Shown: positions 17,970 through 59,863, counted from the first letter of the stretch. The stretch is DNA of 64,000 nt from Phallusia mammillata (GCA_965637545.1 OZ281495.1:13950001-14014000); one strand, 5' to 3'. The notes: generated by a model not told the origin, from the letters alone. Translations and numbers: made by a program.

Positions 17970-18803
17970 CAGGGGTGTCCAACCTTTTTGGCCAAAGGGC
18001 CACATGCGGTTTACGAATGTTTGCGCGGGCCACTTGACTGTTTACTGCTAATTTGTAATCTTAGAAATGGCTGTTTTATAATTCCCAATTAAAATCCTCA
18101 CACCGAAATTCTAATCTTAGAAATGTGTATTATCCTCGTTTACAGTTATAAGAACAATAACACCAATATATAGTTATGTCAACAAAGTTTTTACTACACG
18201 TCGACATTTCAATGTGAAGTTTGGCACTGTTTTTTTCCAACAAGTTTGGCAATATTCGGTGAGATGGACGATGGGGCAATGCGAAGCGAGTTTTCCATCT
18301 GGCTGTCAAAAATTACTGATCTTACAGGGGATTTAAAGTCACATGTCAACCTTTCTTGGAAAGTTCTGTTAGCGTTACTTGCTTTTGTTTCCTGTTTGGC
18401 ATAATCTATATCACTGCAGAGTGCGGATGATGTTTTTACTGCAAAATGCGTTTTGCGCGAGTCTCTGATACCAGATGTATCTCAATTCTCAATGAACCAA
18501 GAAACATTACTGATTGACTCCGAAAGCACGAGTCAGATTGTGACGTAACAATGTAGAAATTGTGATGTGTAACAATGCGCATTGTGACGCAATAGAAGTA
18601 ACTTGAACAGTTGTGTATTGCTACTCTATTAACAAAAAAATTAAGCAAACGATAAATGCCAATCTTTCGGAATGAAAGTTCGCCATAAATTACGTAGGCG
18701 ATTAAGTTGCCAATATGAGTCATTTCAAAAAATACCACGCGGGCCACTCAGAACCTTCCTGCGGGCCACATGTGGCCCGCGGGCCACAGGTTGGACACCC
18801 CTG
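17970..18803. mobile_element. hAT-type MITE, copy A only
   Basis: TIR caggggtgtccaacct / aggttggacacccctg. Subterminal gggccac repeats. 8-bp TSD ttctaagc. Single site in copy B at 49749-49756. Confidence 0.93.
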
Positions 18804-21800
18804 TTCTAAGCAATCCATACCTAATAAAAGTGATGTCTGGATTTTGGTATTGATTTATGCAAAATAATCTGTGGAGTCAAGAACCAGTATTTATTATACA
18901 CTGACCAGCGGAGTCAGTTTTGGATAGCCCGCAATATATATAGAAAGAAAGGTTTTGCTTGATCCATTAAACACGGAAGTTATTTTCCCCAACCTGCGAT
19001 GACTCCCAGCAGCCGTTCTTCTGGAATATTCTTTACAGGTGGCCTAAACTTTCTACTCCCAAGTTAGTGCATGAAACGTCGAAATAAGGAAAGCTCTGAA
19101 AAAGCAGTTTATGCAGTCTCTGTGAATATTACAAGTGTCAACGCAGGCCTAACTAGAAAATTCAGGTGAAAACTGGCGAAAAGAAGTCTTCAGCCCAAAA
19201 TGCGCAATAACTCTGTAGTTTTTTTTTGGAAAAAACGGCGTTGTGTGTAAAAAAAAAATGTTTGTGTAGTTGTAGAAGTGTCCATAAGCACTGCAGGGCT
19301 CGGGTTCTGAGCAGTTGTGAAGATTTGTTCGAATTTGTTTGATATGTATTGTACATTGATGCCTTTGAATGTAAATAGTTAAAAAATTACGTCACGTTTC
19401 AGCACGGGTAAAACTAATGGCGTACTATTCTTACCTAGTATAAACATGTCCCGAGTATAGGCTGCTGATGTGGGTTTGAATGTTATAACAGGCCTAATTT
19501 TTTTTATCCTACGGCTCCCATATGGGTTGGTGACCGGTTGATTCCTATAACGCCTTCAAAAAGCTTAGCTAGGATTTGTATATGAGTGTGCCGTGTGTGT
19601 GAATGTTTTAGGACTAATCCTACTCATGAATTTATGTTCTTCCTAACATGTACCATACTATCATAAACAACAATGCTCTTGAAAATACGACAATAAATGT
19701 ACTCAATAAATACTGAGGCTGGCATATTGACTGTTTTTCAGGGTTTAAATGTTTTTAATGTGTACCATCCTCAAATACTAAACAAAGTTTGATACTGTGA
19801 AGAGCACTTTTTTGCACTGGAAGAACAACGCAGATTATCAGAAACGATGCAGGCAAAACTGAGTAAGTTTGAACAAAGGGAAGCAAAACCAGGAAGTTGG
19901 GGATTCATCGCAAGCTTTTGCGCTGACGAAGCACCGAAGTTTTTTTTTTTTAAAAAGCTAAAACACCTCTGCCGATTGAGCTTATTTACAAAACTTCCTG
20001 TTTTGGCCTGAACTGCTTTTCAAATTTGTTTGAAACTATAGTTCTTTAATAATCATATGTAAGCACGGTTGAAGTTGTACTAACGACCAATAACAAGAAA
20101 ATCTATTTTATTTCACTTTACAAAAAAAAGAATGTTTTTAACGTGGGTTCGGTGCATTAATACAAGGTACCGATCACAATGCAAAACCATAAAGTAGCAG
20201 AATATTCAGCAATAACATGTAAATTAATGTAACTTATAGTTTACAAAAGCAGAAAAATGAAGATGATAAACTAGACCCACAGGATATTTTTAGCTGCTAA
20301 CTAATAATGTAAATTGTAAATAGGTACCTCAACCTGCGACAATAGAATTCTAGACAATAAAATCAATATTGCATTTTCCTAATAAAAACGAATTTGTTAC
20401 CTCACTTTTTTAGAAAACGAAGAAGTTACTCTGGCAACGGAATTAAAAGCCGCGTGTGATTCCCAAGGTATAGAAGTAGATTTGAAAAAATCTTCGTCCA
20501 TTTTTTTGCAACTGGGAAATGTTTACTACCAAAAGTTTTCTAACAACTCGGATCTCACTACGGCGAGATTTGATGCCCTCCGAAGTGCTGCCTTGTACCA
20601 AGCCGTACTGCAAAGATCAGGTCCGAATTCAGATATCAACAAAAAAGCAACCAAAAAGTTACACACATTGTATGGGGCAATATTATCTTCAATTGACTTT
20701 AAAGAAAGTGATACTAAGGTTGAATCGATTGTAAACTCTGCCAAACTAATGTTACGAAAGATGCGAGTGACATTAGAGTTGCAATTTAACAGAATAAAAA
20801 TACCATTTAAAACTTATTCGCAAATCACAAGGCAACAACTGGCCAAATTTTGTGACAAAATGGAATCGTACCAAAATGATGTTTCAGATCATTTTACAAA
20901 ACTTATGAAATACATTTTTGATCACTGCTCAACCTTTGCTGGTGAACCGCCATGTTCGTTTGCTGTGTTGGGTTTGGGATCCCTGGCCAGACTTGAGGTC
21001 ACACCTTTTTCTGACTTTGAGAGCATGCTCGTGTTGGAAAACCAAGCGAAAGTCGACGAAACCGTCAGGAACTACTTTCGAAATTATGCGATGCTGGCGC
21101 ACCTCATCGTCATAGGATTGGGAGAGACCATTCTCCCAGCAATGGCAATACCGTCCTTAAACGATTTCCAAACAGATGGTGGCGACTGGTTTGTTGATTT
21201 GGTTACTAAGCGCGGTCTCTCATTTGATGGTCTCATACCGCATGCCTGCAAGAATCCGCTGGGAAGACTGCCAACGAAAAACAAACCTTGGCACACAGAG
21301 CTCATACAAACTGTCGACAATATGTTGCGGTTTGTTGACGTAGACATTGAACTGAAAGAAGGGTACCATTTAACGGAGATAATTTCGCAGTCAGTTTATG
21401 TGGCCGGTGGGGACAAAAATGGACACCCGTCCGGAAAAAGCGTAGGAACCACTTTTCAAAACCTTGTGTGGAACAAACTTTCACAAAAAACGAAATCACC
21501 TGAGGACAGACAGAAAACCATCGCAACTTTAAACGAGGACATAAGAATATACAACTTTCAAAACCTTAAACATGGCCAATCAGTCAATGTTAAAAAAGAC
21601 TTGTACAGGGGAATCACTATTCTGCTTCCCAGATTGGCCATGTTATTTGGAATTAAAAGAAGTTCCTCTTACGATATTCTCCGTGGCTTACGCACCATAA
21701 ACATGATTGATGATGAATATTGTACCGATCTCCGAACAGCAGTTGCTATTGCCAATTTCTCCCGTGCCAAGACGTACTTTGACAAAGGTGCTCAATGGGA

Positions 21801-23008
21801 CGCATTAGCTGGTGGTAAGTCTTGTTTTGCCAAGAAGAAACAGAGAAATGTTTTAGAGACCGTTTCTTTGAAGGCACTGCAGCATTTATTTTGCGTCGGA
21901 ACAGAGTTTCAATCATCCATTGTTACATCGTTAAAAGGCAGCGACAAATTCGAACCTTTAACAAGATCGGGGAAAAAACTTACCCTCGGCAGTGTGCTTT
22001 TTCGATTTGAAGAGTACGATCAAGCCATTGCGTTTTTTCACGAGCAATTACAAAATCTTGCTAAAACGGAACAAGGTCATTCAACCGACATGTCCGATAC
22101 CCATTTGATGCTGGGAAGATGCTTTTATAGTAAAAGTCAGCACGAGATTGCGTGTCGCCACTTTAACGAAGCCGAAAGGTTTTGTGAAGACAACAAATGC
22201 TTTGCCATGGGACGAATCCTGCTATTTCGAGCACTTAGTGAAAGAAAATTACGAGGAGCGGACACTGTTAACAGCCTGATGAAACGTGCTCACGAATTTT
22301 TCATTCAATCAAACTCTTCTCTGTCCAGCGATGAAGGAACCTACAGCGCACAGTCTTTTGTTGAAACGCTTCAGGAACTCTGTCGAGAAAATTCTGATTT
22401 AGTACCTGAGTTGATCGAGGTAATGGTCATAACGGGCGACCGTTTCTTACAGGAAAGCAAGTCACCGTTTTTAGCTCTTCAGCAGTACGAAACAGCGGCA
22501 TTTGAAATGGAAAAGTACTACAAGGATGACAGGCATATTTTGCTTAATTTGTATGTAAAAGAAGCAATAGCCGTGTGCCAAGGGGGCCTTGGCCAATACG
22601 ACAAGGCCGTAAATACATGGCTCGAAGTAATTGCAAGAACCAAACAATTACCACTCGAGGCTATCGATGACATCTCATTTAAACGAGGTTTCAAGCCCCA
22701 CGATTCTCTGATAAACCATTTGCCAAAAATCAAACTTGCCTTATTTGGATTAAAGAGTCACGACAAAGCAATTGTCGATTGTGGTTCTATCGTCAGGTTG
22801 ATTAATAATTTGGCCGAGAGTACAAGGAAGTATAGCTTGCTTTCTCGCATTCAAGCACGGGTATACGATATACTAGGAGAACTTTACGAACGGGACAACA
22901 TGTACGATAAAGCAATTGACAGCTACGCTCTGGCAAGATCCAACTTTAGACGGTTGTATCAACAAACTAACTTTACAACGGAATCGAAACTGAATCGCTG
23001 TTATTTCA

Positions 23009-23548
23009 CGGCTGATCTGTGAGTGTTGTTGGATGTTAGAACTGATTGCAATTCTGTTACTTCAGAAGGGTTTCTGGCATAAGTGCATATCCCGTATTTG
23101 TCATGGCAGACTTTTGAAATAAGAGTGTATCCTGGTATTCGGGTCTTTGATTCCGGTGATGTTGCTGTAGCGTGGGTTTCTTGGAGTAATGCGATGTCGA
23201 CTCTGTGTTGTTGGAGGATTTTCCCAAGATATTCGCATTTGGGCATTGAACTTCCCTCGATGTTAAGTGAAAGGATCTTTGTCTGGTTGCGGAATTCAAT
23301 GGAGCCTAACTTATTTTTCGAACCTGCTGGGCTCTGTAGGTTGTCAGCAGGAACGCGAACGTTTTTATTCTGGGCCACGTTCGATCCAGCATTTTGTTTC
23401 ATTTCTTTGTAAAGCATCATAGTAAGTAAGGTAGTAGAGAGACGTGTACCCAGGATGGCGCGTTGCCGTTTGGGTACCGGGTTGGACTCGATCTTAGTGA
23501 TTGTAAGCCCCTACACCAACGACAAGGTGTCGAGTCCCTTCGTAGGGG
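23009..23548 (-). mobile_element. 5' fragment of an Ingi/Vingi-like non-LTR retrotransposon (5' UTR plus start of AP endonuclease)
   Basis: Minus-strand ORF from 23420 has ILSLNIEG...VDIALLQETH...IPGY...HDKYG (APE motifs). Absent from copy B, where 101 bp of host exon (53946-54046) occupy this position. The clade assignment is from memory of APE and 5'-end style. Confidence 0.8.
23484..23548 (-). ncRNA. HDV-like self-cleaving ribozyme (L1Tc/ingi-type) at the element 5' end
   Basis: Minus strand: P1 CCCCUAC/GUAGGGG, P2 GGACUCGA/UCGAGUCC, P3 ACC/GGU, L3 UUGUCGUU, a single-bp P1.1 (G-C), and J4/2 CUAAGA. The nested pseudoknot topology is complete. Confidence 0.75.
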
Positions 23549-26500
23549 TTGGATTTACTAAACTGCTACAAAGTAGTAAAGGATTGCGTACTACTTAAAG
23601 AATTACTGGATGCTGTCTCTTTACTGCTGACATTGCTAAAGAAGTCTGACGACAACTCGGATATCATAACAGCATTTTTTAATCTATTGGTTGGAATTAC
23701 AACATTAAACCGCACGGAAGTAAGCAAAGTTATAACTCTTCTTAATCGAGCAGCGTTTCATTTCTGGCGACAACCTGCTGAGGATTTTGCAAGATTAGTA
23801 GAAAGGGCAACTGCTTTAGTCTGCAGAACGGAAACACTCGATGTAAAGGAGTTTGACAGTTTTCTGTGTAAATCTGTTGAAAAAATCTTGAAGATATCTC
23901 CTCGATTGGCCTTTAACAGGCAGACGACTATGATGATACGAAAAACTCTAGAAACCATTGGTAATGAAAGACAATACCCTACCTGGTGCATTCCCGAAGA
24001 TCACATTAATCTGCGAACAGCATTGATCAACTATTGCACAAATATAGGTGATGTATCCGATGCCTTGGAAGCATTGGAGCCAACGTCACCAAGAGGAGGT
24101 AAATCGGTGTTTTTTCTCAGACTCTCGGCAGCCGAATCCCTCAGAAAGGACGAAAAGCTTTCAGAAGCAATGTTCGCTTGCAACTTGGCGTTAACAACCG
24201 TTGCTGACATTACATCTATTTCGCACTCTGAAAGGGATTTCTTACATGCCAAGGCAATGTCGTCGATCGCACGAATTTTTGCTGAACAAAATCAAACTGG
24301 GGCGGCTTACCGTGCTTGTAAACAATCCATTGACTTTCTACGATCGCTTCCAATCAAGCACGAATTCGCAGTTGACCAGTACATAGCACTGTTGTTTGAC
24401 GTAGCAGAGATGAGTAAGGCGCTGGGCGTAACTTACGAATTTTACTACCACGGCCAAGCTTTGGTCGGTCAAATCGCTTCTTTGTCTTTAAACCATACAA
24501 ACAATACAAATTTGCTGTTGCTTTTGGAAATTACAAACCCGTTGTTTAGCGAGCTGCAAACAGTTACATCAAGTCAACTTCAACTTCTTCGTAAAGTCAG
24601 TCAGTCGCCGGCTTTCATTAATTGGAGGCATCAGGGTAATGAAAAAGCGGCAGTAGACCTGGTTTCAGTCTTGCTTACACGCATTTTTACAACTTTCAAA
24701 TACCTGTCAGAAGATGTCAACCCCGAACCTCTATTTAAAGCATTACGGGACACCATTGAGCACGATTTGATTCCGTGTGCTAAACTTCCAAGCAAGGAGG
24801 AAACGCAGGTCAGTTAAACATAATCAACACTAAATACCAGGGCTACTTAAATAATGTTGTCAATGGTCCACAAGCGAAAGGTACAAATCAACGAGCTCCT
24901 TTTTGTGCTAGCACTTCAAGTTGATGGCGGTTTGAGAGCGACGAAAATTTTCGTTGCGATTTGATAGGAGATGTCATTTTTGTTTGTCTTTAATAGTTTG
25001 AACTCGCCGAATTGAAGAGGTTTCTAATTTGTTTAAGTTTGGTTCCCAGGTTATTGGCACAACATTGGCAAATTTCAGATTTGTTTTAGGATTAGTTGGA
25101 TATCGTAGTTCTATGTCTAAGGGCTTATATTTTTGTTTCTAGATCAGGGACTTTTAAGCCTCCTTTATTTTTTTACATCAACCATCTGTAAAAGTTTCAT
25201 CCAAAAACATCAAACATTTTATTGAACAAAAGAGGGTGAACAAACTGCAGGAAACAAAACAACAAAACATATCGAGTAACAATCAAAATATGTCCCCTTC
25301 CCACCGTAAAGGCCTGCAAACAACCTATAAATTTTTTGGTGTCTGTAACTTATGCCACAGCACAAAGTAAACATTTATTTGCATTGTAGGCTATATGCAG
25401 CCATACTATTTCTGTTACTTTCTTAAGTGTATAAAATGACTTTCGGTTGTACCTTTGTGGATTCAAACCAACGCGTTTTGCAGGAGTCGGTCCGCGTTCT
25501 ATCACAGAAAATTCCAGTGATGAAGTTCATCGAAACGCAACTAATCGTGGCGACAATGTACAAGAGAGCTGGTCGTGCGTCAGACTCCAAAATTTGGTTC
25601 AAAGCAGCGTTGAAAGATATTCAAAGCAATGAACCAATTTATTCCCACATCAGCAAGAGGTGCATATTTAATTTGTTACGGGATTAAAAGTTTTGCATGT
25701 GTGAAAATTTTCGAGGTCTTCGAGCAAAAATGCCTAACTTCACCATGTTTATGTATGACTTATCCCGCTTAACCTAAACCCGACTCTTCAATGTTTTTTT
25801 TTTACTTAACAACTTCCGAAAGTGTGTCAAGATTAACTTTAGTATTATCTTATATAGTTACACACAATGTCTGATGGGCCTCAGCTGGTGCGGCATGGAG
25901 TTGAAAAAAGTCGACAAAGCTTGGGAGCACTTGATAACGGCATTTGAGGTGTCTTTAAGAGTCGCCAACGACACATCGCGACATTTGGAGATGACAAGCA
26001 TTTGCCGGACGGAAACACGCACGAAGCAAACCTGGGACGATGCCATGTCCTATTTGACCGACTTTACAGAAGTTAAAGCCATTTGTAGTGACTTAAAACG
26101 ACGGAGAAGCACGACAAAAAAGCGGTTTCAAGTCGGTGCTGAAACGAGCCGAAGCAAGTCGTTTGTGGTATTAAGACCGTCGTGTGTCAAGTAGTTACAA
26201 TATTTCGATTGAAAATTGTCACGCCACTTACTTGTTTCCTTAAAATGCAACACAAGCAAACCTGCCAGATTTGTTTATTCGACTGTCGAAAGTAGTAAGA
26301 AACCGTTCCTTAAAATTTTGTTTTAAGTTGTTTACATATCATCTATTTCCAAAAAAATACGACTCAAACGCATGCTCTATTGGCTTTACACTGCGTACTG
26401 TTGTGTTTGATTAAAATGCAAAACCTATTTTCATGCTATCACGTTTTTGCAACATGTCATACCTGTTTAAATATGTTACACTGTTTGCATATTTAGTTGT

Positions 26501-27244
26501 GTCGCGTTTGGAAATGTCACATAGCCGATGAATCAGATTAGCTGAATCTGGTAGGCGCGTGACTCGGGTTAGCCCCAAGGGAAAAAGTCTAAAATGCAGC
26601 TAGTCCACGCTTTTACTGCGGCAGCAACTAAACTGTAGGGCAGTAATCGTTTCCAACAGCCACTTTGTCGAGCAGACGTCACTCGCATCGCGGATGATGA
26701 CGCATGCGATTCTCGCAACTAACGTGCCATATCCTGTGCGCACTGACAACAGCATATTTACAGTGCAAGCCGGACTTAGCAGACTAAAACGAAAAATCGC
26801 AACAGCAGCAGCAAGCACTTTTTGCCAGTCAGCTTTATGAGGCATAAGCGACCTCGTTAGTACGGTCAAAAGGCTGAGTAAACATCATTAGGTTTATTTA
26901 GGTCAGAAACAGAAACGCCCTTACATGAAGGTCCACTGAGTAAAATAACCTTGGTCTATGATTTTGATGTACTGTACCAGCAGAGTCGATTTGCAGGTAG
27001 TTTTGCGCAGGAAAATAACTTGATCGGTATTTGAGAAGGCGCTACTTTTGACTGCGCCAAGTGTGACATAACTGTTTAAAGTGGCACCTGGTCAGTTCAA
27101 GTAATAAAGTGTAGCTAAAGGGCGGCTTCATCCAGTAAAAACGCCTGAAGCAATGACACAAGGATGACGTAATGTTACTTTAAACGCGTGTCCTTTGTCA
27201 GGTCTTAAACAGAGGCTGGTAACAGGAACAAGGTAGTGTCAAAA

Positions 27245-28815
27245 ATGGCGGCCTTGCAATCTGGCCGAAAATTGCGCGCAGTATTTGTGGTGACCAGACA
27301 CGGTCAACGAACGCCCTGCTTTTGTCAAAGAGTTCACCGTGCTTAACGAAGCGTTGCAAGACGACCTGCTTACTCATCCGTGTCACGCCATAGTACCCAT
27401 AGAACTGCGCAGCTTGGAAGGGGGTCCAGCTCCGACCAGTGTATTTGATAAAATGCACAAAGAAAACGGATTTTTGTACGGTGGTACTTGCCTTCCTGGA
27501 CAATTGACCGGTAAAGGCGCCGACGCACAGTTTAGAATTGGAAAATGGCTTCGTAAACGCTACGTGGAAGATGATAAGTTGATATCGCCGAAATATGTGA
27601 AAGAGGAGATTTTTGTGCGATCCAGCAACATGAGGAGAACTGTGCTGTCTGCCAGAAGCGTTTTAGCAGGTCGGTAGGGAAATGCTTTTTAATGCTAACC
27701 TCGTATCATGCATAAAAATGAGTATACGTTCAAACAGCTAATATCGAAACACGTTTTGCGAAGGTTTGTATCCTGGTCACCATAAACAAAAGATTCCCAT
27801 TCATGTAACTACGTTTGAGGAAGAAATTATTCAGCCGAAAACAGCCTACTCTTTGTCTTTCCGTAACCAAGAACTTGTTGAAAGCAAAGAAGCGAAGAAA
27901 CTTGTAAGCAAAAAGACACACTGTATAATTTGAATCTGATGCCTTAAATTTGATTACTTTTAAGGGTGAAGAAATTGGAGAATTTCTTCAAACAGATACT
28001 GAAGTGGATGTATTCTGTTTGGCAGACAACGTTTTGTCTCTGGAAGAACTTGGCATAAAAAGCAAAGTCATGGAATCGCCTTTGTGGAACAAAGCTTATG
28101 AGATTGCTAAACGATTTATGCAATCATATGCTGTTGGGACAAACGGGCGAGAGTGAGTGAAAACGCTTGTCTATGCGTTATTTTATGGTTATTATACCTT
28201 TAGGACTAAGGACTGTACGGTTTTTGTTTTCAAACTCCTTTAAAATTTAATCGTCTGTTTTGTTTATTACAAATGCAAACACAGCGGATAAACATTGTAA
28301 TATCTTATTTTTGTTGTCCGAAAAGATACTTTTATGGACATAAATTAGTTATTTGCTTTAGATTTTTTAAGGAATATTCCAGGGCAGGTACAGATTGTAA
28401 ATAGAGTTATTTTTCGAACAGACGTGAAGCATTGCAATCTGGATTTGGAGCGCTGCTGGATTTCATCGTCACAAACATACAAGGTGTACTAGAAGAAAAA
28501 ATCTCTCACAAATTGTTTTTGATAGGCGGCCACGATCAAACCGTGTTACGTACTCTGCAGTCAGTCGGATTATCCGAAAATGACCTGCCGCCAACCAATT
28601 CTAAAGTGATTATTGAAGTCTATGACAAAGACCTTGAAACATCCCCGACGCAACACGTCAGCGTTAAGTTCTACAGAAGTGAAGAAAACCAACTTTCACA
28701 GAAGGAAAAAGATTTTACAGTTGAGGAATTTATAAAGACCGTGTCTCCATATCGCATAACTTTGGATGCATACGTACAGCGGTGCAAACGATTTGACCGC
28801 AACAACCAACCTTAA
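27245..28815 (+). pseudogene. ACP6: Lysophosphatidic acid phosphatase ACP6-like, copy A, +1 frameshift
   Basis: RHGQRTP is followed by tgctTTTg (4 T at 27320-27323, vs 3 T in copy B), giving an early TAA. Downstream exons are intact (GQLT, LRKRYVED, RSSN, GHDQT). A homopolymer sequencing error is possible. Confidence 0.75.
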
Positions 28816-29370
28816 CCCCTTAACGACGACCATATAACTCAGTGTATATAGGAAAAAAATATTTGGTACGCGTCGGCTATTATAAAGCATTTGGAGAGAA
28901 GACACAATATTTGCACCCCATTTTTTATCGCATTTTGGGAGGTACTTGCCCGCTGCGACGAATTCGGCACATTCGTCCATCAAGATAAAAATAATTGCAA
29001 ACATTTTCGCATATGCATCTCGTAGTTAATCGTACACTATTAGGTTTGAATAAAAAGGTTTGCATTATTACGTAATCATATCGACAAGGATGATACCGAA
29101 ACCAGTTTATGATGTCACATACTTCTGTGACGTCATAATTTATTCAAATCCCGTTATTTTATGTCAAATTTGTTTCGTTTGAAACCACTTCGAGATTGCC
29201 TTTTCAATATTCGTCACCTTCTTTTTGTGCGTTTCTAACAAAAGCGAAACGAACCGTCCCAGTCGGCATAGATTTTAATATTTCCAAATATGCAATTTTA
29301 CGACAAATGCAAAGTAAGTACACTTGTTCTAGAACATGTGTATTAAGCTAACAAGCTTCGATAGTCGGCC

Positions 29371-30545
29371 TATGGAACACATAGACCACACTATGGAACA
29401 CATAGACCACACTATGGAACATATAGAGCAGAAGGCACTTACAACCTTCCACACGTCGCCGACGTCATTACCGACAGTAACGTGGTCCACACATTTCACA
29501 CACACCTGAACACCATATCACCTACAATAGCTTTCACCGTGGAAACCGAACAACACGATACCATTGCGTTTTTGGATGTGGCTGTCACTAGGCAGCCAGA
29601 CCAAAAGCTCACCACAAACATTTACAAGAAGCCCACCAACACTGATCGCTACCTACACTACACGTCTTACCATCCACGGCACCAAAAACTTACAGTTGCC
29701 AAAACGCTTTACAACAGAGCCACAACTCACATCAAGGATACGGTTATTCACAAACACGAATGCAAAAATATTGCACGCGTGTTAAAGAATAACGGTTTCC
29801 CGCGCAACTTACACCACATGACCCATAACACAACCACCTCACAAAACAGACAGTTTAGATCATTCACTTGCTTACCTTAGGTCCAGGGTGTATCGGAGCG
29901 CCTAAAACGAATATTGAACGATGCTGGGGTAAAAGTGGCAATGAAACCCTTTAAACCGATTGGACAGTTGTTACCAAAACCAAAAGATGCCACTATACCA
30001 CAACATCGTACAGGAGTTGTTTACCAGGTCCCTTGCCGTGATTATGATATGCCGGGTATACATTGGTCAAACTAAGCGGAATCTAAATTCACGTCTCAAG
30101 GAACACAAAGTGGCAGTCAAAAACATGGATGTTAACAAGTCCGCCTTATGCGAACACGTTTTTGTATGTGATCACCGCATCAATTGGAAGTTTTAAAACA
30201 GGAACCTAATTGGTCGAAAAGATTGGTCTTTGAAAGTTGCCACATAAATTCTAATCCAAATGTTTTAAACCGTAACGACGGCAAAAACCTCAGCGCAGTT
30301 TTCCGCGACATTTTGCGTCCGACTTCCTCTTCAAATATCGGACATTAGTTACGCACTGTCACAATATAGCACACTCAACCCATCACGGAAAGCCTTTGTT
30401 CTCTTATAATTACTTTACGCTATATCCCGCTGTGCTTGTGCATTTTCGCTTGTGGTGCTCGCATTATTTCGTTTATTGCTCTGATGAAGCCCTACCGTTC
30501 TGGGCGAAACGTTAGCGAAATACAAGTTATTAAAAACAACAATTA
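29371..30545 (+). mobile_element. 5'-truncated, decayed Penelope-like element (RT C-terminus plus GIY-YIG), copy A; YVDD motif deleted
   Basis: MEHIEQKAL, FLDVAV, YKKPTNTDRYLHY.SYHP, LP*VQGVSE, VVYQVPC and YIGQTKRNL..RLKEH. The WLRYVDD segment seen in copy B is missing at ~29460. A 21-bp unit is duplicated at the 5' end. Confidence 0.88.
30474..30522 (+). ncRNA. Minimal type I hammerhead ribozyme (PLE-type)
   Basis: tattGCT-CTGATGA-A-GCCC(taccgttct)GGGC-GAAAC-GTT-AGCgaaata. Core, stem II and stem I are all present, with a GUU triplet. Confidence 0.8.
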
Positions 30546-31993
30546 GTATTTTGTTTAGCATTACACCAGTTGAACGACAAATTTGTTAAAAAAACGCGTG
30601 GTGGTAAACTTTTGTTGGAGACCGCTGTGAAAGCCCTTCTAATGTTTTTTTTCGTTTGGCCAAATTGGATGCAAACGATAAACCTGGTAATCGTAGGTAA
30701 AAATGTTTAGAAAAAGGGACAAAACAAAGTATATGGGTTTAGACGCCGAAGACGATTGTGCACAAGAAAATACAACTCACCAGTACCAGAGAAATTTACA
30801 AAAACAAACAAACAAACAAACATTTGTCTAACTGTCGATTTTGCCTTTTTTTTAAGAGTTTCTACCTTTATTCTTTTATGCGTTATTATTGTAAAGGAGA
30901 TCCATACAACTTGCAGGACGTTTTTAGCACAGCATGTAGATTGTAGAGAATTACAACAAAACCAGTCATTTGTTTTGGATGTTCTGTTTCTGTGTAGGGA
31001 GGGAGTTGAACCCAAAGTCTCTCTATCAAACACAAGTTGTCGCACGAGAATTCATGGAGCGTGAAATGGGGCGACTTTGCACGCTTTTAACACTGATCTC
31101 TACAAACCCTGGATTGCGCTACTCCGTTGAACGGTTGGGTGGTTTTTGAAGCAAATTGAAGCGTAATGGCGGCTGAAAAGGAAGCCCCAAAAATGCATTG
31201 CGGACAATGGGGAGAGAGTGGAAAAAAGTCGATAAATTTTGTTTTAGGCAGTTTTGTGGCGATTTTTTCAGATATGATCAGTAGTTTAATAGGACGCATG
31301 TCTTCCAGTGTGTAATAACCTATAAATATGCGCAGATTGACTGTGAGGTGTAAGTATGTGTACTGGGAATTAAAACGTTTTTAAGTTAGTGTTGAAATAA
31401 ATCTTTACTGAGTTGTAATAAATGTTTTTTTGGTTCAATATGAGTAGTTTACATGCGTTCCTATATATTTAAGACATAAATCCAACAAGAATGGCTCTTT
31501 CCTTCACACATGATGATGTGATACTTCATTTAACATCATCTTGTGCTGATCCAAACTGCTGTTTTTGATTGTCACCAAAGTCTTGGAACTAAAATGTGAC
31601 TTTAAAGTTTTTTAAAAGTTTGTTGCAGTAGGTTTAACATTTTTACTTGTATGCTACCAACTGTAAACCTAGTATGCTCATTTTTTTAGCTTATTTAATG
31701 TAACCTCAGTTTGCAACCAACATGTGTAGAATAAATTTTTGGTAAAATGTTTCGAATTCTCAAACTTAACTAAACTCCAAAATCTCAAAGAGATACATGT
31801 ACATAAATGCATTTAAGACCTCACACCCAAATGAGATGCCTATTTATGTACTATTTTAGTCTGAATCATGACATATTGTTTTATTTCTATTTCATTTCCA
31901 CTCAATATGCAATTTCCTGCAAAAAAAAACATGCCTACACAACACTCCAACACTTAAATTCTTTCTTGCAAAACAGGAATGAAGGCAACGATT

Positions 31994-33265: not shown

Positions 33266-34903
33266 ATGTCTGATGAAAGAGAAAATGTTCCTTCTACATC
33301 GCAGGAACTGTTTGACGTGATTGATGTTGTCAGGCAAGAACCAGCTAATGAAGGCGTCCAATCTGCTAAAGGTTCTGTGCGAAGTGTCAAGAGCACTGCC
33401 AGTGCGCGTGCTCGCCGTGAAGCCGAAGCTGCAGCATTGAGGCTGGAACAACTTAAACGGCGATGTGCTCTTAGGTCCAAGGCGTTGGACATGGAACTGG
33501 AACTGAAAGCCAGAAAACAAAATTTGGACACGGAACTGAAACTGAAAGCCAGAAAACATAATTTGGACACTTAACTGAAAGCCAGAAAACAAAATCTGGA
33601 AATGGAACTCGAGTTGGAGTTAGACAAAGCCCAAGAAGAATTCGAGTTGGCCGAGTTTGCTGCTGATACAGTAAGCGAGTTTGACTCATGTGAGTCTTCA
33701 CATGGATGGGATCATACCCCGATCAAAAAGCCTAACCCTGTAGTGCTAGTGGAACACGCAAAGGTTTCTGCAAAGGCACAGGACTACAATCAGGAAGTAA
33801 CGCCTAACATTTATAAGCATACAAAGGCGTTAACGCGTGCCCAAAATGAACAACCATCGAAAGCTATTTCAGAACGAACAACGAATGTGAACTCGACAGA
33901 CAAACCACTTGCGCCAGCCAAGTCACAGGTTTCTGTCGGGCCTTCTCGAGTCCTCCCAGCGAAGGCAGAGGGATTCGGTCCTGTGGTTGCCACCTGCGCA
34001 GAAGCCACTGGGGCCGGCACATTTCAAAAGGAGCATCAATATGCAGCAATAAAACCTTGCCCTCATGGTCCACCGGCGACCACTGAGAATTGGTATGTAA
34101 TTGCAGAAACTATAAAACAAGGTTTCAATTTACCGAAACTGTCATTGATGAAGTACGACGGCGACCCTATTAACTATCACAAGTTTATGAACGACTTCGA
34201 TCGGCAGATAAACAAGGCGTATTTATCTGATGCTGTAAAGCTGGGATATCTCTGTGAATTTTGCACTGAAAATGCTCTGACCAACATTTTGGAATGCAAA
34301 AGCATGCCTCCCGAATTAGGATACAGGGAGGCATTGGATATACTCCACAGGAGACATGGGAGATTAGACCTTGTAGTTAGAGCGCATATGGACAGATTGA
34401 CGCAACGCCCACAATTAAAGGATAGCGACTTCCAGGGCTTGCAACAGTTTCGTGCACAAGCTGCAGAAAGTTACAAGTTATTCAGTCAATGGGACTGTAA
34501 ATACACGCTCGATCTGCCTCAAAATGTTGAGGCCGTTGTGCAGCGCTTGCCGCAGAGGGCAATTAGACGGTTCATCACTAAATCATCCGAACTTCGTTTA
34601 CGAAATCAACCAGTAACCTTTTAAGCCTTATTGGATCTTTTGGAATTGTTGGTAGAGGATACACTCTCGCCAATGATGAGGTTTATTTCCGACGAGGAAC
34701 GTAAGTCAAGGAGCCAAGTTACCAATAAAGGCAAGTTCCCGGGTCGAGTCGCAGCTACATACTCGACAGTGTCGGGTGAAGACTCATTTGTGAATCAGGA
34801 TCTACGACGAACCCTTACATGCCCCCAATGTGGGTCGTCACATTTTTTGTGGAAATGTGAGGCCTTTAAGAGCCAACCGGTAAAGGAACGTCATGCCCTA
34901 TAG
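33266..34903 (+). pseudogene. BEL gag region, interrupted (stops at 33572 and 34622, frameshift at ~34902)
   Basis: LPKLSLMKYDGDPINYHKF (DUF1759-like) and a CPQCGSSHFLWKC knuckle. A tandem ELKARKQNL repeat lies at ~33495-33610. Confidence 0.8.
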
Positions 34904-37900
34904 TGCGGCGTAACAAACTGTGTTTTAACTGTTTTCGTCCCGAGCATTGTGCGGGCGAATGTACATCCAATTATGTGTGTCGTGTAGACGGTTGTGGGAA
35001 AAGGCACCACACGCTACTGCATTGGGCGCAACCTTCTGGCCCATCCGGGCAATCTTCTAGCGCTTTAGCGGGAGTTGACGGATCCGCCCTGCCTGGAATA
35101 TCCGCTGCTACTCTGCGAACTCACTCTGTGCGACTTAAGGTCGTGCCAGTTACCGTCTTGGATATAGATTGTAAACCCCATTTCACACATGCCTTTCTTG
35201 ACGACGGGTCAGACACGTCATTGTGCTCTGCAGCATTGGCAAAGAAACTGGGACTAAGCGGTGTTGAAGACAACTTGACAATTACTACCGTAAACGGAAC
35301 GCAGGCATTGCGCAGTCGAAAAGTTTCGCTATCCGTACAAGGCCTGAACGATGGCGCATGTTTTTTGTTGAAGGATGTTAGGGTCGTTCCCAAGTTACCC
35401 AACCTACAAGGCAGCATTCCTACTGTGGACGATATAAAGCGGTATCCGCACATTCGGGATCTCAAGTTCTCTACAATAAACTGTCCGAATGTCGACTTGC
35501 TCGTCGCAGCCGATGTTTACGAGGCTCACGAGCAACATGAGGCTGGACGTGGATCTCGTGGCGATCCCATTGCTATTCGCACTGGTTTGGGTTGGTGTTT
35601 GTTTGGCCCAGGGAAAAAGCAGGACACTGAGAACGCGAACGTAAATCACATACACGCTGACACAAAGCTACATTATCAATTGGAGCAATTATACAGTACT
35701 GAGTTTCAGGATAAACGTTCGAGTGACCTAGGACTTTCACTTAATGACAAACGAGCTCTTTCAATCATGAAAAACAGTGTCATTAAAGTAAATGGACATT
35801 ACCAGATAGCCTTGCCTTGGAAATCGCCTGAACCCATTCTGCCCTACAACAGGAGCTTGGCAGAACGACGCTTGTCACACTTAAAGCGCCGCCTTGACAA
35901 GGATAAGGAATTGCTTGAAAGGTACACAGAAAAGATGCAAGATTACTTGAAACAGGGATTTGCTCGAAAGATTCCCCCAGATAGTTTGCCATGTACAAAG
36001 CAAACATGGTACATTCCACATCACGCGACGGGTGGCAAATTCCGAATCGTTTTTGATTGCGCCGCTTCCTACAAACGAACTTCCTTGAACGACAAGTTGC
36101 TGCAAGGGCCTGACCTTACCAACAGCCTTGTCGGAGTGCTATTACGCTTTCGCCAAGAAATGATTGCCTTTGCCGCTGACATAAAAGGCATGTTTCACCA
36201 GGTGAGGGTTTTGCCCGAGGACTGTGATTCGCTTCGATTTCTGTGGTGGCCCAACGGGGACACAAGCCTGCCGCCAGTGGACTATCAAATGTTGGTACAT
36301 TTGTTTGGTGCCACATCATCGCCTAGTTGCGCGAGCTTCGCGCTGCGTAAGGCTGCGCTCGACCAGAACGACATGTTTTCGCATGATACTATTGAGACCA
36401 TTTTGAATTTTTTTTATGTTGACGACTGCCTCAAATCAGCGTCGTCAGTTACGCAAGCCACTGCGCTAATCAGGGACATAACCGAGGTTTTGCGTGAGGG
36501 CGGATTTCACCTGACGAAATTTCTTAGCAACTCGACAGCCGTCCTCGAGTTTGTTAACGAACCAGACCGCTCAAGTGCAGTGCTGAACTTGGATTTGTCG
36601 GACTTACCTAGTGAAAAAACATTGGGAATTCAGTGGAACATGGCCAATGACAGCTTTGGGGTTCGAGTGAATATAAAACAAAAGCCGCATTCCCGTCGCG
36701 GAATGCTCTCAATGATCAGTCAGGTCTACGACCCACTTGGATTTATCCAACCCTTTATGCTTCCTATGAAACGGCTAATGCAGTCTCTTTGCAACCAGCA
36801 GCTTGATTGGGACGATCCACTGCCCGAAAGTGCGGTTGAGCATTGGAATCTTTGGTTGGACCACGTACCTTTATTAAAAAACGTTTCTATACCGCGTTGC
36901 TACAAACCTCCCAATGCAGTCATCGTTTCAACACAGCTGCACTGCTTTGGCGATGCCTGCGAGACCGGGTTCGGTGCGGTGTGTTATCTTCGCTTTGTTG
37001 ACTCAAACGGGAATATTCACTGTTCATTGGTGCTTGGAAAATCTCGTGTGACCCCTTTAAAACCTGTCACAATACCGCGACTGGAACTCGTCGCTGCTGT
37101 AACTACAGTTAAATTAGGGACAATGATTGTTCAAGAATTGGACTATGACCTAGACAATGTGTTGTTTTGGTCTGACTCGACAACTGTGCTACACTACATA
37201 CACAATACTGCTCGCCGTTTTCAGACCTTTGTTGCGAATCGCCTCGCTATAATTCATGAGCATTCGCGGCCATCACAATGGCGACATGTTGGAAGCAAAG
37301 ATAACCCTGCTGACATTGCTTCGCGTGGACTAATGCCCAACGAATTTGTTAAAGCCAGACAGTGGTTCAGGGGACCAGATTTTTTATGGAACTGTCAGGA
37401 TTCCTGGCCTGATCAGCCGGCCATATTTTCTGTAGCTGATACAGACCTCGAAATAAAGTCACATACTATATGTACTACAAAGGTGACTGCCAATGACACG
37501 CCACTGCAACAGCTGTTGCAGCGTTTTTCTTCGTGGGATAAACTGCAAAAATCTATCGCTTGGTTGAGCCGATTTAAGGACTGTGTGCTTTGGAAATACG
37601 ACAAGAATAGGTCTGCGGATGCGCCAAGTTTTAACCCGGTAGGACTGACTGTACAAGAGTTGGAAAATGCGTCAAAATATATTGTGCAGTTGGTACAACA
37701 AGAAGCGTTTCCCTCTGACCTTGCCTGCCTGCCGGACTGTAAAAGCTTTGAAGAGGCAATGCAGCATTGTTGCTCAACGAAATATCGTTCGTCGTTGTGC
37801 AAGCTGCGCCCCTGTCTTGTCAACGGTATTATTTGCGTTGGAGGAAGACTGCGGAGGTCAGATGTATTTGAGCAACAAAAACACCAGATTATTTTGCCAT

Positions 37901-50790: not shown

Positions 50791-53700
50791 ATGCAGGCAA
50801 AACTGAGTAAGTTTGAACAAAGGGAAGCAAAACCAGGAAGTAGGGGATTCATCGCAAGCTTTTGCGCTGACGAAGCACCGAAGTTTTAATAGGCTAAAAC
50901 ACCTCTGCCGATTGAGCTTATTTACAAAACTTCCTGTTTTGGCCTGAACTGCTTTTCAAATTTGTTTGAAACTATAGTTCTTTAATAATCATATGTAAGC
51001 ACGGTTGAAGTTGTACTAACGACCAATAACAAGAAAATCTATTTTATTTCACTTTACAAAAAAAAAGAATGTTTTTAACGTGGGTTCGGTGTATTAATAC
51101 AAGGTACCAATCACAATGCAAAACCATAAAGTAGCAGAATATTCAGCAATAACATGTAAATTAATGTAACTTATAGTTTACAAAAGCAGAAAAATGAAGA
51201 TGATAAACTAGACCCACAGGATATTTTTAGCTGCTAACTAATAATGTAAATTGTAAATAGGTACCTCAACCTGCGACAATAGAATTCTAGAAAATAAAAT
51301 CAATATTGCATTTTCCTAATAAAAACGAATTTGTTACCTCACTTTTTTAGAAAACGAAGAAGTTACTCTGGCAACGGAATTAAAAGCCGCGTGTGATTCC
51401 CAAGGTATAGAAGTAGATTTGAAAAAATCTTCGTCCATTTTTTTGCAACTGGGAAATGTTTACTACCAAAAGTTTTCTAACAACTCGGATCTCACTACGG
51501 CGAGATTTGGTGCCCTCCGAAGTGCTGCCTTGTACCAAGCCGTACTGCAAAGATCAGGTCCGAATTCAGATATCAACAAAAAAGCAACCAAAAAGTTACA
51601 CACATTGTATGGGGCAATATTATCTTCAATTGACTTTAAAGAAAGTGATACTAAGGTTGAATCGATTGTAAACTCTGCCAAACTAATGTTACGAAAGATG
51701 CGAGTGACATTAGAGTTGCAATTTAACAGAATAAAAATACCATTTAAAACTTATTCGCAAATCACAAGGCAACAACTGGCCAAATTTTGTAACAAAATGG
51801 AATCGTACCAAAATGATGTTTCAGATCATTTTACAAAACTTATGAAATACATTTTTGATCACTGCTCAACCTTTGCTGGTAAACCGCCATGTTCGTTTGC
51901 TGTGTTGGGTTTGGGATCCCTGGCCAGACTTGAGGTCACACCTTTTTCTGACTTTGAGAGCATGCTCGTGTTGGAAAACCAAGCGAAAGTCGACGAAACC
52001 GCCAGGAACTACTTTCGAAATTATGCGATGCTGGCGCACCTCATCGTCATAGGATTGGGAGAGACCATTCTCCCAGCAATGGCAATACCGTCCTTAAACG
52101 ATTTCCAAACAGATGGTGGCGACTGGTTTGTTGATTTGGTTACTAAGCGCGGTCTCTCATTTGATGGTCTCATACCGCATGCCTGCAAGAATCCGCTGGG
52201 AAGACTGCCAACGAAAAACAAACCTTGGCACACAGAGCTCATACAAACTGTCGACAATATGTTGCGGTTTGTTGACGTAGACATTGAACTGAAAGAAGGG
52301 TTCCATTTAACGGAGATAATTTCGCAGTCAGTTTATGTGGCCGGTGGGGACAAAAATGGACACCCGTCCGGAAAAAGCGTAGGAACCACTTTTCAAAACC
52401 TTGTGTGGAACAAACTTTCACAAAAAACGAAATCACCTGAGGACAGACAGAAAACCATCGCAACTTTAAACGAGGACATAAGAATATACAACTTTCAAAA
52501 CCTTAAACATGGCCAATCAGTCAATGTTAAAAAAGACTTGTACAGGGGAATCACTATTCTGCTTCCCAGATTGGCCATGTTATTTGGAATTAAAAGAAGT
52601 TCCTCTTACGATATTCTCCGTGGCTTACGCACCATAAACATGATTGATGATGAATATTGTACCGATCTCCGAACAGCAGTTGCTATTGCCAATTTCTCTC
52701 GTGCCAAGACGTACTTTGACAAAGGTGCTCAATGGGACGCATTAGCTGGTGGTAAGTCTTGTTTTGCCAAGAAGAAACAGAGAAATGTTTTAGAAACCGT
52801 TTCTTTGAAGGCACTGTAGCATTTATTTTGCGTCGGAACAGAGTTTCAATCATCCATTGTTACAACGTTAAAAGGCAGTGACAAATTCGAACCATTAACA
52901 AGATCGGGGAAAAAACTTACCCTCGGCAGTGTGCTTTTTCGATTTGAAGAGTACGATCAAGCCATTGCGTTTTTTCACGAGCAATTACAAAATCTTGCTG
53001 AAACGGAACAAGGTCATTCAACCGATATGTCCGATACCCATTTGATGCTGGGAAGATGCTTTTATAGTAAAAGTCAGCACGAGACTGCGTGTCGCCACTT
53101 TAACGAAGCCGAAAGGTTTTGTGAAGACAGCAAATGCTTTGCCATGGGACGAATCCTGCTATTTCGAGCACTTAGTGAAAGAAAATTACGAGGAGCAGAC
53201 ACTGTCAACAGCCTGATGAAACGTGCTCACGAATTTTTCATTTAATCAAACTCTTCTCTGTCCAGCGATGAAGGAACCTACAGCGCACAGTCTTTTGTTG
53301 AAACGCTTCAGGAACTCTGTCGAGAAAATTCTGATTTAGTACCTGAGTTGATCGAGGTAATGGTCATAACGGGCGACCGTTTCTTACAGGAAAGCAAGTC
53401 ACCGTTTTTAGCTCTTCAGCAGTACGAAACAGCGGCATTTGAAATGGAAAAGTACTACAAGGATGACAGGCATATTTTGCTTAATTTGTATGTAAAAGAA
53501 GCAATAGCCGTGTGCCAAGGGGACCTTGGCCAATACGACAAGGCCGTAAATACATGGCTCGAAGTAATTGCAAGAACCAAACAATTACCTCTCGAGGCTA
53601 TCGATGACATCTCATTTAAACGAGGTTTCAAGCCCCACGATTCTCTGATAAACCATTTGCCAAAAATCAAACTTGCCTTATTTGGATTAAAGAGTCACGA

Positions 53701-56698
53701 CAAAGCAATTGTCGATTGTGGTTCTATCGTCAGGTTGATTAATAATTTGGCCGAGAGTACAAGGAAGTATAGCTTGCTTTCTCGCATTCAAGCACGGGTA
53801 TACGATATACTAGGAGAACTTTACGAACGGGACAACATGTACGATAAAGCAATTGACAGCTACGCTCTGGCAAGATCCAACTTTAGACGGTTGTATCAAC
53901 AAACTAACTTTACAACGGAATCGAAACTGAATCGCTGTTATTTCAAGGGGGGGTATTATTTGAAAGCTGTTCAGAATTTCAAACATTACCTTACAGAATG
54001 CTTAAGAAAGTGTTCCCCTATTAACGAGAACGCAATTCAAATTCTTTTGGATTTATTAAACTGCTACAAAGTTGTAAAAGATAGCGTACTACTCGAAGAA
54101 TTACTAACTGCTGTCTCTGGACTGTTGACTTTGCTAAAGAAGTCTGACGGCAACTTGGATATCATAACAACGTTTTTCAACCAACTAATTGGGATTACGA
54201 CATTCACCAGCACGGAATTAATCAAAGTTATAACTCTACTCAAACAAGCAGCGTTTCTTTTTTGGCGACAACTTGGTGAGTATTTTGCAAGATTAGTAGA
54301 AAGGGCGACGGCTTTAGTTTGCACAACGGAAACCCCCGATATAAAGGAGTTTGCAAGTTTTCTGTGTAAATCTGTTGAAAAAATCTTGAAGATGTCTCCC
54401 CAACTGGCCTTTAACAGACAAACGACTATGATGATACGAACCACTCTGGAAACCATTGATACTGAAAGAAGACAATTCGCTATTTTGTGTGTTAGCGAAA
54501 TGGAAGATCACATTTATCTGCGAACAGCATTGATCAACTATTACACAAATATAGGTGATGTATCAGATGCATTAGAAGCATTGGAGCCAACGTCACCAAG
54601 CGGAGGTAAATCGGTGTTTTTTCTCAGACTCTCAGCAGCCGAGTCCCTCAGAAAAGACGAAAAGCTTCCAGAAGCAATGCTTGCTTGCAACTTGGCGTTA
54701 ACAGCCGTTGCTGACATTACATCTATTTCGCACTTTGAAAGGGGTTTCTTACATGCCAAGGCAATGTCGCCGATCGCACGAATTTTTGCTCAACAAAATC
54801 AGACAGGGGCGGCTTACCGTGCTTGTAAACAATCCATTGACTTTCTACGATCGCTTCCAATCAAACAGGAATTCGCAGTTGACCAATACATAGCACTATT
54901 GTTTGACGTAGCAGAGATGAGTAAGGCGCTTGGGGTAACTTACAAATTTTACTACCACGGCCAAGCTTTGGTCGGTCAAATCGCTTCTTTGTCTTTAAAC
55001 CATACAAACAATACAAATTTGCTGTTGCTTTTGGAAATTACAAACCCGTTGTTTAGCGAGCTGCAAACAGTTATATCAAGTCAACTTCAACTTCTTCGTA
55101 AAGTCAGTCAGTCGCCGGCTTTCATTAATTGGAGGCATCAGGGTAATGAAAAAGCGGCAGTAGACCTGGTTTCAGTCTTGCTTACACGCATTTTTACAAC
55201 TTTCAAATACCTGTCAGAAGATGTCAACCCCGAACCTCTATTTAAAGCATTACGGGACACCATTGAGCACGATTTGATTCCGTGTGCTAAACTTCCAAGC
55301 AAGGAGGAAACGCAGGTCAGTTAAACATAATCAACACTAAATACCAGGGCTACTTAAATAATGTTGTCATTGGTCCACAAGCGAAAGGTACAAATCAACG
55401 AGCTCCTTTTTGTGCTAGCACTTCAAGTTGATGGCGGTTTGAGAGCGACGAAAATTTTCGTTGCGATTTGATAGGAGATGTCATTTTTGTTTGTCTTTAA
55501 TAGTTTGAACTCGCCGAATTGAAGAGGTTTTTAATTTGTTTAAGTTTAGTTCCCAGGTTATTGGCACAACATTGGCAAATTTCAGATTTGTTTTAGGATT
55601 AGTTGGATATCGTAGTTCTATGTCTAAGGGCTTATATTTTTGTTTCTAGATCAGGGACTTTTAAGCCTCCTTTATTTTTTTACATCAACCATCTGTAAAA
55701 GTTTCATCCAAAAACATCAAACATTTTATTGAACAAAAGAGGGTGAACAAACTGCAGGAAACAAAACAACAAAACATATCGAGTAACAATCAAAATATGT
55801 CCCCTTCCCACCGTAAAGGCCTGCAAACAACCTATAAATTTTTTGGTGTCTTTAACTTATGCCACACAAAGTAAACATTTGTTTGCATTGTAGGCTATAT
55901 GCAGCCATACTATTTCTGTTACTTTCTTAAGTGTATAAAATGACTTTCGGTTGTACCTTTGTGGATTCAAACCAACGCGTTTTGCAGGAGTCGGTCCGCG
56001 TTCTATCACAGAAAATTCCACTGATGAAGTTCATCGAAACGCAACTAATCGTGGCGACAATGTACAAGAGAGCTGGTCGTGCGTCAGACTCCAAAATTTG
56101 GTTCAAAGCAGCGTTGAAAGATATTCAAAGCAATGAACCAATTTATTCCCACATCAGCAAGAGGTGCATATTTAATTTGTTACGGGATTAAAAGTTTTGC
56201 ATGTGTGAAAATTTTCGAGGTCTTCGAGCAAAAATGCCTAACTTCACCATGTTTATGTATGACTTATCCCGCTTAACCTAAACCCGACTCTTCAATGTTT
56301 TTTTTTTACTTAACAACTTCCGAAAGTGTGTCAAGATTAACTTTAGTATTATCTTATATAGTTACACACAATGTCTGATGGGCCTCAGCTGGTGCGGCAT
56401 GGAGTTGAAAAAAGTCGACAAAGCTTGGGAGCACTTGATAACGGCATTTGAGGTGTCTTTAAGAGTCGCCAACGACACATCGCGACATTTGGAGATGACA
56501 AGCATTTGCCGAACGGAAACACGCACGAAGCAAACCTGGGACGATGCCATGTCCTATTTGACCGACTTTACAGAAGTTAAAGCTATTTGTAGTGACTTAA
56601 AACGGCGGAGAAGCACGACAAAAAAGCGGTTTCAAGTCGGTGCTGAAACGAGCCGAAGCAAGTCGTTTGTGGTATTAAGACCGTCGTGTGTCAAGTAG
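50791..56698 (+). pseudogene. NTase-TPR gene, copy B, two in-frame nonsense codons
   Basis: The large exon 51351-55315 has no insertion. It has CAG>TAG at 52817-52819 and CAA>TAA at 53243-53245 relative to copy A. The repaired model is ~1,497 aa. Confidence 0.82.
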
Positions 56699-59307: not shown

Positions 59308-59863
59308 CCCCTTAACGACGACCATATAACTCAGTGTATATAGGAAAAAAATATTTGGTACGCGTCGGCTATTATAAAGCATTTGGAGAGAAGACACAAT
59401 ATTTGCACCCCATTTTTTATCGCATTTTGGGAGGTACTTGCCCGCTGCGACGAATTCGGCACATTCGTCCATCAAGATAAAAAGAATTGCAAACATTTTC
59501 GCATATGCATCTCGTAATTATTCGTACACTATTAGGTTTGAATAAAAAGGTTTGCATTATTACGTAATCATATCGACAAGGATGATACCGAAACCAGTTT
59601 ATGATGTCACATACTTCTGTGACGTCATAATTTATTCAAATCCCGTTATTTTATGTCAAATTTGTTTCGTTTGAAACCACTTCGAGATTGCCTTTTCAAT
59701 ATTCGTCACCTTCTTTTTGTGCGTTTCTAATAAAAGCGAAACGAACCGTCCCAGTCGGCATAGATTTTAATATTTTCAAATATGCAATTTTACGACAAAT
59801 GCAAAGTAAGTACACTTGTTCTAGAACATATGTATTAAGCTAACAAGCTTCGATAGTCGGCCT

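Follow-up and report, generated by a model that had tools for sequence, protein, structure and literature searches.

Two interrupted copies of a gene from a large animal family of nucleotidyltransferases with tetratricopeptide-like repeats in Phallusia mammillata

A stretch of 64,000 nucleotides from Phallusia mammillata (GCA_965637545.1, OZ281495.1:13950001-14014000), referred to here at its full length as the window, carries a gene in which a nucleotidyltransferase (NTase) resembling bacterial GlnE and DUF294 proteins is joined to a long arm similar to tetratricopeptide repeats (TPRs), which raises the question of what this enzyme does, whether the locus still encodes it in a working form, and how animals and bacteria came to have it in common. 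The reading adopted here, which is considered probable, is that the window holds copies of a large animal family that combines an NTase of the GlnE/DrrA fold with TPR-like repeats, that the intact members of this family are probably enzymes that attach nucleoside monophosphates (NMPs) to proteins, that is, NMPylases (AMPylases, where the group is AMP), and that the family is undergoing birth-and-death turnover at this locus.

The kind of enzyme is observed in both the sequence and the fold. The gene is present twice in the window, as copies A and B, and Pfam DUF294 (PF03445) is matched by copy A with 28.3-29.4 bits and by copy B with 29.9 (gathering cutoff 21), together with SidM_N at 25-28 bits, about the threshold of that family. 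DUF294_C (PF10335) has no sequence match in the window's own protein; among 22 aligned relatives, DUF294 is found in all 22, SidM_N in 11, and DUF294_C in seven. The search of the solved structures of the PDB with a profile of the domain returned DrrA as the sole match (E 3.6e-6), which covers the GS...SD-x-[DE] core as well as the helical part. The nearest clusters in the ESM Atlas are bacterial DUF294/DUF294_C proteins of approximately 400 amino acids (aa), and the animal family is filed in databases under names assigned automatically, for example [quoted passage not shown].

The NTase unit was modeled by AlphaFold2 (AF2) on an alignment of 62 sequences, given that a single-sequence run of the domain reached a predicted local distance difference test score (pLDDT) of 38, and the resulting model has a pLDDT of 90.5 and a predicted template modeling score of 0.90. 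Its alignment by VIA-align places the AMPylation domain of DrrA first (Z 21.4 over 273 residues), followed by two GlnE domains (Z 20.7 and 19.1; 273-287 aligned residues), the next family being the aminoglycoside NTases, at Z 6.6. In Foldseek, the E values are 5e-9 for DrrA and 7e-8 to 4e-7 for GlnE, with a probability of 1.00, and all the remaining matches lie above 0.05. The cGAS/DncV-like NTases (CD-NTases) align at Z 3.4-4.2, with a root mean square deviation above 7 Å and a Foldseek E of about 1, values at which the model is not assigned to the CD-NTase fold. The helical part aligns with residues 209-327 of DrrA at Z 8.1 and with HEPN-like domains at Z 5-6.6. The Rx4-6H motif of HEPN RNases is absent from this subdomain, and the sole occurrence in the NTase unit (residue 104) sits in the NTase core. 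According to AF2 and VIA-align, the Pol-beta NTase core and the helical substrate-binding subdomain form a single structural unit, as in the protein adenylyltransferases of the GlnE/DrrA type, and the enzyme unit belongs to the DUF294/GlnE/DrrA kind.

The catalytic residues fit this assignment. The motif LGSLARLEVTPFSDFE lies at 20974-21021 on the plus strand, and its G70...D82-F-E84 agrees with the G-x11-[D/E]-x-[D/E] motif of GS-ATase and DrrA (PMC8097203). The pattern GS-x10-SD[FL]E is conserved in 117 of 120 homologues and, across 62 animal and bacterial sequences, G70, S71, D82, E119, D153, K275, and R332 never vary, while E84 is almost invariant. The original prediction, made from the DNA sequence alone, had recognized a GlnE/DUF294-like NTase with a GS-x10-DxE motif, an adjacent helical region of the GlnE/DUF294_C type, and no HEPN RxxxxH motif. 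The NTase, its motif, and the lack of a HEPN motif agree with the present results, and the helical part has the fold of the substrate-binding subdomain of GlnE and DrrA.

The arm that follows the enzyme is described less firmly. Only two stretches of its approximately 1,000 aa reach or approach the Pfam TPR thresholds; TPR_12 and TPR_1 (28.7 bits, cutoff 27.8) are matched, and the approximately 420 aa that follow the break in copy A yield TPR_MalT at E 0.002 and weak TPR look-alikes in the Atlas only. The sequence beyond the TPR_12 block is weakly indicated to be helical-repeat-like and too diverged for Pfam, and the predicted 1,000 aa of TPR-like helices are backed by Pfam over the two stretches only.

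The two copies are the product of a tandem duplication of approximately 31.5 kb inside the window, which contains no runs of N. The segment at 18803-23008 is 98.9% identical to 49748-53945, and that at 23549-31075 is 96.4% identical to 54047-61579. In copy A, on the plus strand, the gene extends over 19847-24817 and is mostly a single exon. Its putative start is marked by an ATG at 19847, a GTAAGT donor at 19863, a T-run, and an acceptor AG at 20412-20413, which join in frame, as originally proposed; no in-frame ATG is present in the big exon upstream of the conserved N-terminus. The reading frame is open at 20386-23019 (878 codons), homologue alignments span 20329-22242, and coding resumes at 23546-24814 in a different frame. 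The shift is caused by a fragment of a long interspersed nuclear element (LINE), which takes the place of 101 bp of coding sequence. The removal of this fragment by splicing was considered and rejected, given that GTGAGT at 23019 and the AG at 23544-23545 do not join in frame and the contigs contain no such joint. The Rfam scan of 22800-23800 found no ribozyme or other RNA family at E <= 0.1. The small 3' exons of the earlier model (25427-25684 and 25874-26194) have no backing from homologues or Pfam, and one contig crosses the stop at 24815 unspliced. The gene originally drawn at 19847-26194 keeps its putative start and its main exon, is not intact, and gains no support for its last small exons from homologues or Pfam.

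Copy B preserves the approximately 4 kb that had been attributed to one exon, as a single frame at 51323-55321, and this frame contains two in-frame stops, at 52817-52819 and 53243-53245, at both of which copy A has a Gln codon. The first stop is codon 499, four codons past the end of the NTase unit (codon 495). The second is seen independently in run X1, one contig of which carries it (22306 C>T). The pieces of both interrupted copies were searched separately. The full-length reading frame is interrupted in copy A and copy B alike and, because of this, the locus encodes no working full-length sensor-enzyme, contrary to what had been suggested.

The substitutions that separate the copies nevertheless show past purifying selection. 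In the first part of the gene, the copies differ by eight synonymous and 10 non-synonymous changes (p = 0.026), and in the second part (23549-24817), by 44 synonymous and 54 non-synonymous changes (p = 1.4e-6), with a non-synonymous to synonymous rate ratio (omega) of approximately 0.34 in both cases. Since the differences between the copies still bear the mark of this selection, the breaks must be recent. Divergence between 23549-24400 and 54047-54910 jumps immediately after the LINE junction and decays over approximately 900 bp, with synonymous divergence falling from 0.39 to 0.23, 0.14, and 0. This patch has an omega of approximately 0.33 and a symmetric substitution spectrum, and probably arose by gene conversion from a third paralogue. 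For the variable part at 23549-24200, diversifying selection was rejected, given that synonymous divergence is raised as much as non-synonymous divergence and the spectrum is symmetric.

The expression data come from four small runs, which were guessed to be RNA and probably are. The contigs that cover the coding region in these runs are short, with a depth of 3-5. Variants of copy B, the second stop among them, are present in some, and a variant of copy A in one, whereas none of the contigs of the four runs shows a splice joint. These contigs weakly suggest that both copies are transcribed at a low level. The stretch at 23004-23547, which is the LINE fragment of copy A, belongs to contigs of approximately 3.2 kb with a depth of 44-62 in two of the probable RNA runs, and its family looks highly expressed.

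The gene is one of many. With clustering at 50% identity, an exhaustive profile search recovered 2,819 clusters, of which 1,137 reach E <= 1e-30. The suggestion of a lineage-expanded family is borne out, and the gene is a real animal gene. The named members come from three species of Branchiostoma, Ciona, Clavelina, the octocoral Paramuricea, and the annelid Owenia, and many others lie on long contigs of assemblies in the European Nucleotide Archive, in two of which the gene is an uninterrupted single open reading frame (ORF). Some proteins of the family have two or three NTase units, and relatives are located on chromosome-scale animal scaffolds. No paper on the animal family was found in the literature; a survey of HEPN domains (PMC3710099) and a paper on TRADD-N (PMC8195603) do not describe it.

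Bacterial counterparts exist. A word-based search with the domain alone as the query gave six matches, none of them bacterial, and a scan of bacterial genomes found the NTase-TPR architecture in the Holosporaceae bacterium “Namur” (G+C 28-30%) and in an uncultured metagenome-assembled genome (MAG). A partial NTase match lies in a Rickettsiales MAG, where there is no ORF of 150 aa or longer. Among plasmids, pS13 of Neochlamydia sp. S13 was found to match in 11 places, and the protein examined there has an F-box (36.2 bits), SidM_N/DUF294, and ten TPR_12 blocks. These matches are the NEX2 family of Neochlamydia, whose members Domman et al. (2014, PMC4209131) regard as probable effectors directed at the host. 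The NTase-TPR architecture is already published in this genus, and the statement that DUF294-TPR fusions occur in amoeba-associated chlamydiae proved correct. The bacterial genes also occur as neighboring paralogues, with two divergently placed copies on one Holosporaceae contig (JACGYV010000021.1) and, on the plasmid of Neochlamydia (NZ_AP017978.1), a row of large genes named “tetratricopeptide repeat protein”, an arrangement that mirrors the tandem arrays of the animal genome. A weak match to the NTase core (E 4e-4, 87 residues) was also recorded on a Burkholderia thailandensis plasmid (NZ_CP141811.1, 199692-199952), in a gene annotated as a C80 family cysteine peptidase, which may represent a DrrA-like module in a large toxin-like protein.

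The relationship between the two groups was examined in a quick maximum-likelihood tree of 70 rows (LG+C20 PMSF). The search with alignment A2 gave 107 matches, all from the close family and with no canonical DUF294 outgroup, for which reason the tree was left unrooted, and GlnE, at approximately 12% identity, was not used as the root because long-branch artefacts would decide the outcome. Sequences of bacterial type are separated from the animal sequences by a branch that has 98% support, and the gene of the window lies on a long branch inside the tunicate-type group (99% support). It is thus a diverged member of the tunicate-type branch, and no recent arrival. Given that the NTase-TPR module is common to animals and to effector-like proteins of obligate intracellular bacteria, one ancient inter-domain transfer of this module, in either direction, is likely.

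A recent acquisition from an endosymbiont, or the bacterial contamination of the assembly, would account for the close bacterial counterparts with the same architecture and 26-44% identity, and carries next to no probability here. It is excluded by the position of the gene in the tree, by a G+C content (0.39-0.42) that is the same as that of the flanks, and by surroundings made up of spliced animal genes and animal transposons, with the gene lying within the 31.5-kb duplication alongside a BEL/Pao element and the LINE insertion; the intron predicted in the gene and the relatives on animal scaffolds point in the same direction. The synthesis of a nucleotide second messenger, as by cGAS and the CD-NTases, or the modification of RNA or a small molecule rather than a protein, is improbable. 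It would be in keeping with an NTase of the Pol-beta superfamily, with the appearance of aminoglycoside NTases, MNT antitoxins, and CD-NTases lower in the list of structural matches, and with the existence of conflict systems that have TPR-coupled CD-NTases (PMC8195603). The modeled fold favors protein AMPylation or NMPylation over the nucleotide signal that had been offered as one of two activities, because the CD-NTases reach a Z of only about 4 (and the aminoglycoside NTases about 6), as against 19-21 for the protein AMPylases DrrA and GlnE, in alignments that include the helical subdomain, and DrrA is also the sole PDB match at the level of the sequence.

More weight, although still a minor share, is given to the possibility that the two copies are alive as truncated, working NTase-only enzymes, copy A with a short TPR arm, like the short members of the family. 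The open frame of copy A retains all the invariant residues, the first stop of copy B falls just beyond the domain, the Clavelina members of 572-628 aa consist of the N-terminus and the NTase only, variants specific to A and to B are found in the short contigs, and the NTase part has the low omega given above. Against this, the 830 codons downstream of the stop in copy B are still open, bar one further stop, which indicates a very recent loss rather than a settled short form; copy B has also replaced Tyr by Phe at the nearly invariant Y199 of the domain (Tyr in 51 of 62 sequences), selection in the NTase part is judged from 18 substitutions only, and the runs are called RNA by guess. Either copy could possibly yield an NTase-only product. 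The interpretation of the locus as interrupted copies of a protein-modifying family has a number of points against it. The 878-codon frame of copy A and the position of the first stop of copy B mean that “broken” may overstate their condition, and the natural NTase-only proteins of Clavelina indicate that truncated products could work. Protein NMPylation by the animal family is a prediction from the fold and the motif, the second catalytic carboxylate is Glu and not Asp, and the third metal ligand is placed by conservation only. Most of the repeat region is below the Pfam TPR thresholds, the tree comes from a quick search and has no outgroup, and the transcript evidence comes from runs of guessed type with no splice joint.

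If the preferred reading is correct, the NTase of the intact family members would move AMP, or another NMP, from the nucleoside triphosphate onto a Tyr, Ser, or Thr of a protein, with D82, E84, and probably D153 acting as the metal ligands, and the TPR arm would either select the substrate or restrain the enzyme until a ligand binds. The locus in the window would represent the birth-and-death turnover of the family, with NTase-only products at most.

A 2021 review recognized Fic enzymes and SelO as the only known metazoan AMPylases (PMC8097203). The hundreds of genes of the DrrA/GlnE type in amphioxus and tunicates, together with the octocoral and annelid members, would form a third class, if active. 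A bolder version, which is put forward tentatively and is rather doubtful, holds that the family is such a third class, of AMPylases or NMPylases acting on proteins, in which the enzyme is released when the rapidly changing TPR arm senses a ligand, either foreign or self, that its ancestry is common with the host-directed effectors of chlamydial and holosporacean symbionts, and that even the truncated copies at this locus might stay active; host and symbiont would, in this case, share the same weapon. The kinship with the NEX2 effectors of amoeba symbionts poses, in any case, a concrete question on the relationship between host and symbiont. The N-termini of the amphioxus members contain neither a death-fold nor any other immune adaptor domain, no paper on the family was found, and the immune module of the original prediction gains no support; an immune role of the animal family is a conjecture. 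The window, which has no intact gene at this locus and two damaged copies, provides a case of rapid birth and death, through duplication, nonsense mutations, a LINE insertion in which coding sequence was lost, and what is probably a tract of gene conversion. The coordinates of the features are given in Table 1.

Table 1. Features of copies A and B of the NTase-TPR gene, in positions of the window.
Feature	Position	Strand	Evidence or remark
Putative first exon, copy A	19847..19862	+	ATG plus 13 nt, then donor GTAAGT at 19863; sequence signals only
Large exon of copy A, first part	20414..23008	+	N-terminal helical hairpin, NTase domain, first TPR block
GlnE/DrrA-type NTase with helical substrate-binding subdomain, 367 aa	20770..21870	+	Pfam, AF2 model, structure and profile matches
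Catalytic motif G-S-x10-D-x-E	20977..21021	+	G70, S71, D82, E84 of the domain
Additional invariant residues	E119 (21124), D153 (21226), K275 (21592), R332 (21763)	+	Conservation in 62 sequences
TPR_12 block	21982..22188	+	Pfam 42.7 bits, cutoff 30.1; residues 501-569 of the ORF starting at 20482
LINE 5' fragment (N-terminal part of the endonuclease domain), 540 bp	23009..23548	-	Exo_endo_phos E 6.3e-5; without counterpart in copy B
Helical-repeat continuation of copy A in another frame, to the stop codon	23549..24817	+	Open frame 23546-24814; weak TPR_MalT and Atlas TPR-like matches
Putative first exon, copy B	50791..50806	+	Same motif as copy A
Large exon of copy B	51351..55324	+	One frame, 51323-55321, with two in-frame stops
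Coding sequence of 101 bp kept in copy B, lost from copy A at the LINE junction	53946..54046	+	Comparison of the copies

Other features surround the two copies. The BEL/Pao element, a long terminal repeat retrotransposon, lies at 33602-38880, between the halves of the tandem duplication, and has long open frames for gag (DUF1759) and for pol (Peptidase_A17, reverse transcriptase, integrase zinc finger, and DUF5641). A gene for a histidine phosphatase (branch 2), with short exons, is found downstream of the NTase-TPR gene in both halves (27339-27677 and 57727-58182). The end of the window, at 59559-64000, is formed by head-to-tail repeat units of approximately 2,021 bp with 99.8% identity, each of which contains one ORF of 174 aa (59864-60388 and 61885-62409).

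Among the known systems, the closest structure is the N-terminal AMPylation domain of DrrA/SidM of Legionella pneumophila (PDB 6yx5, 3nku), and the sequence likeness, at approximately 15% identity, runs across both the helical subdomain and the GS...D-x-[DE] core. Unlike the protein of the window, DrrA has no TPR array; bacteria secrete it as an effector, and it carries a guanine nucleotide exchange factor domain and a domain that binds phosphatidylinositol 4-phosphate. Its second carboxylate is Asp, where the window has Glu. The glutamine synthetase adenylyltransferase of Escherichia coli, GlnE (PDB 1v4a, 3k7d), has the same two-part fold of NTase and helical subdomain, and differs in having two such units and in controlling one metabolic enzyme under PII. 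In the DUF294 family (PF03445/PF10335), the first of the two domains exceeds its gathering score here, and the sequence of the window does not reach DUF294_C. The NEX2 (PMC4209131) and Holosporaceae proteins share with the window the order of a DUF294 NTase followed by C-terminal TPRs in large, multicopy proteins. The identity of 26-44% between NEX2, the Holosporaceae proteins, and the Rickettsiales MAG, on one side, and the animal proteins, on the other, extends across the whole NTase unit, and includes the shared motif INLGET. NEX2 has, however, an N-terminal F-box (in some cases, also OTU) and canonical TPR_12 arrays, whereas the protein of the window lacks an F-box in the Pfam scan, and most of its repeats have diverged too far for Pfam. 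The metazoan TPR-Fic AMPylase FICD/HYPE (PMC8097203) is comparable by analogy only, in joining a TPR region that recruits the target to a domain that transfers AMP; its Fic fold is unrelated to the Pol-beta NTase, and it is a single gene in most animals, in contrast with the hundreds of genes of the family described here.

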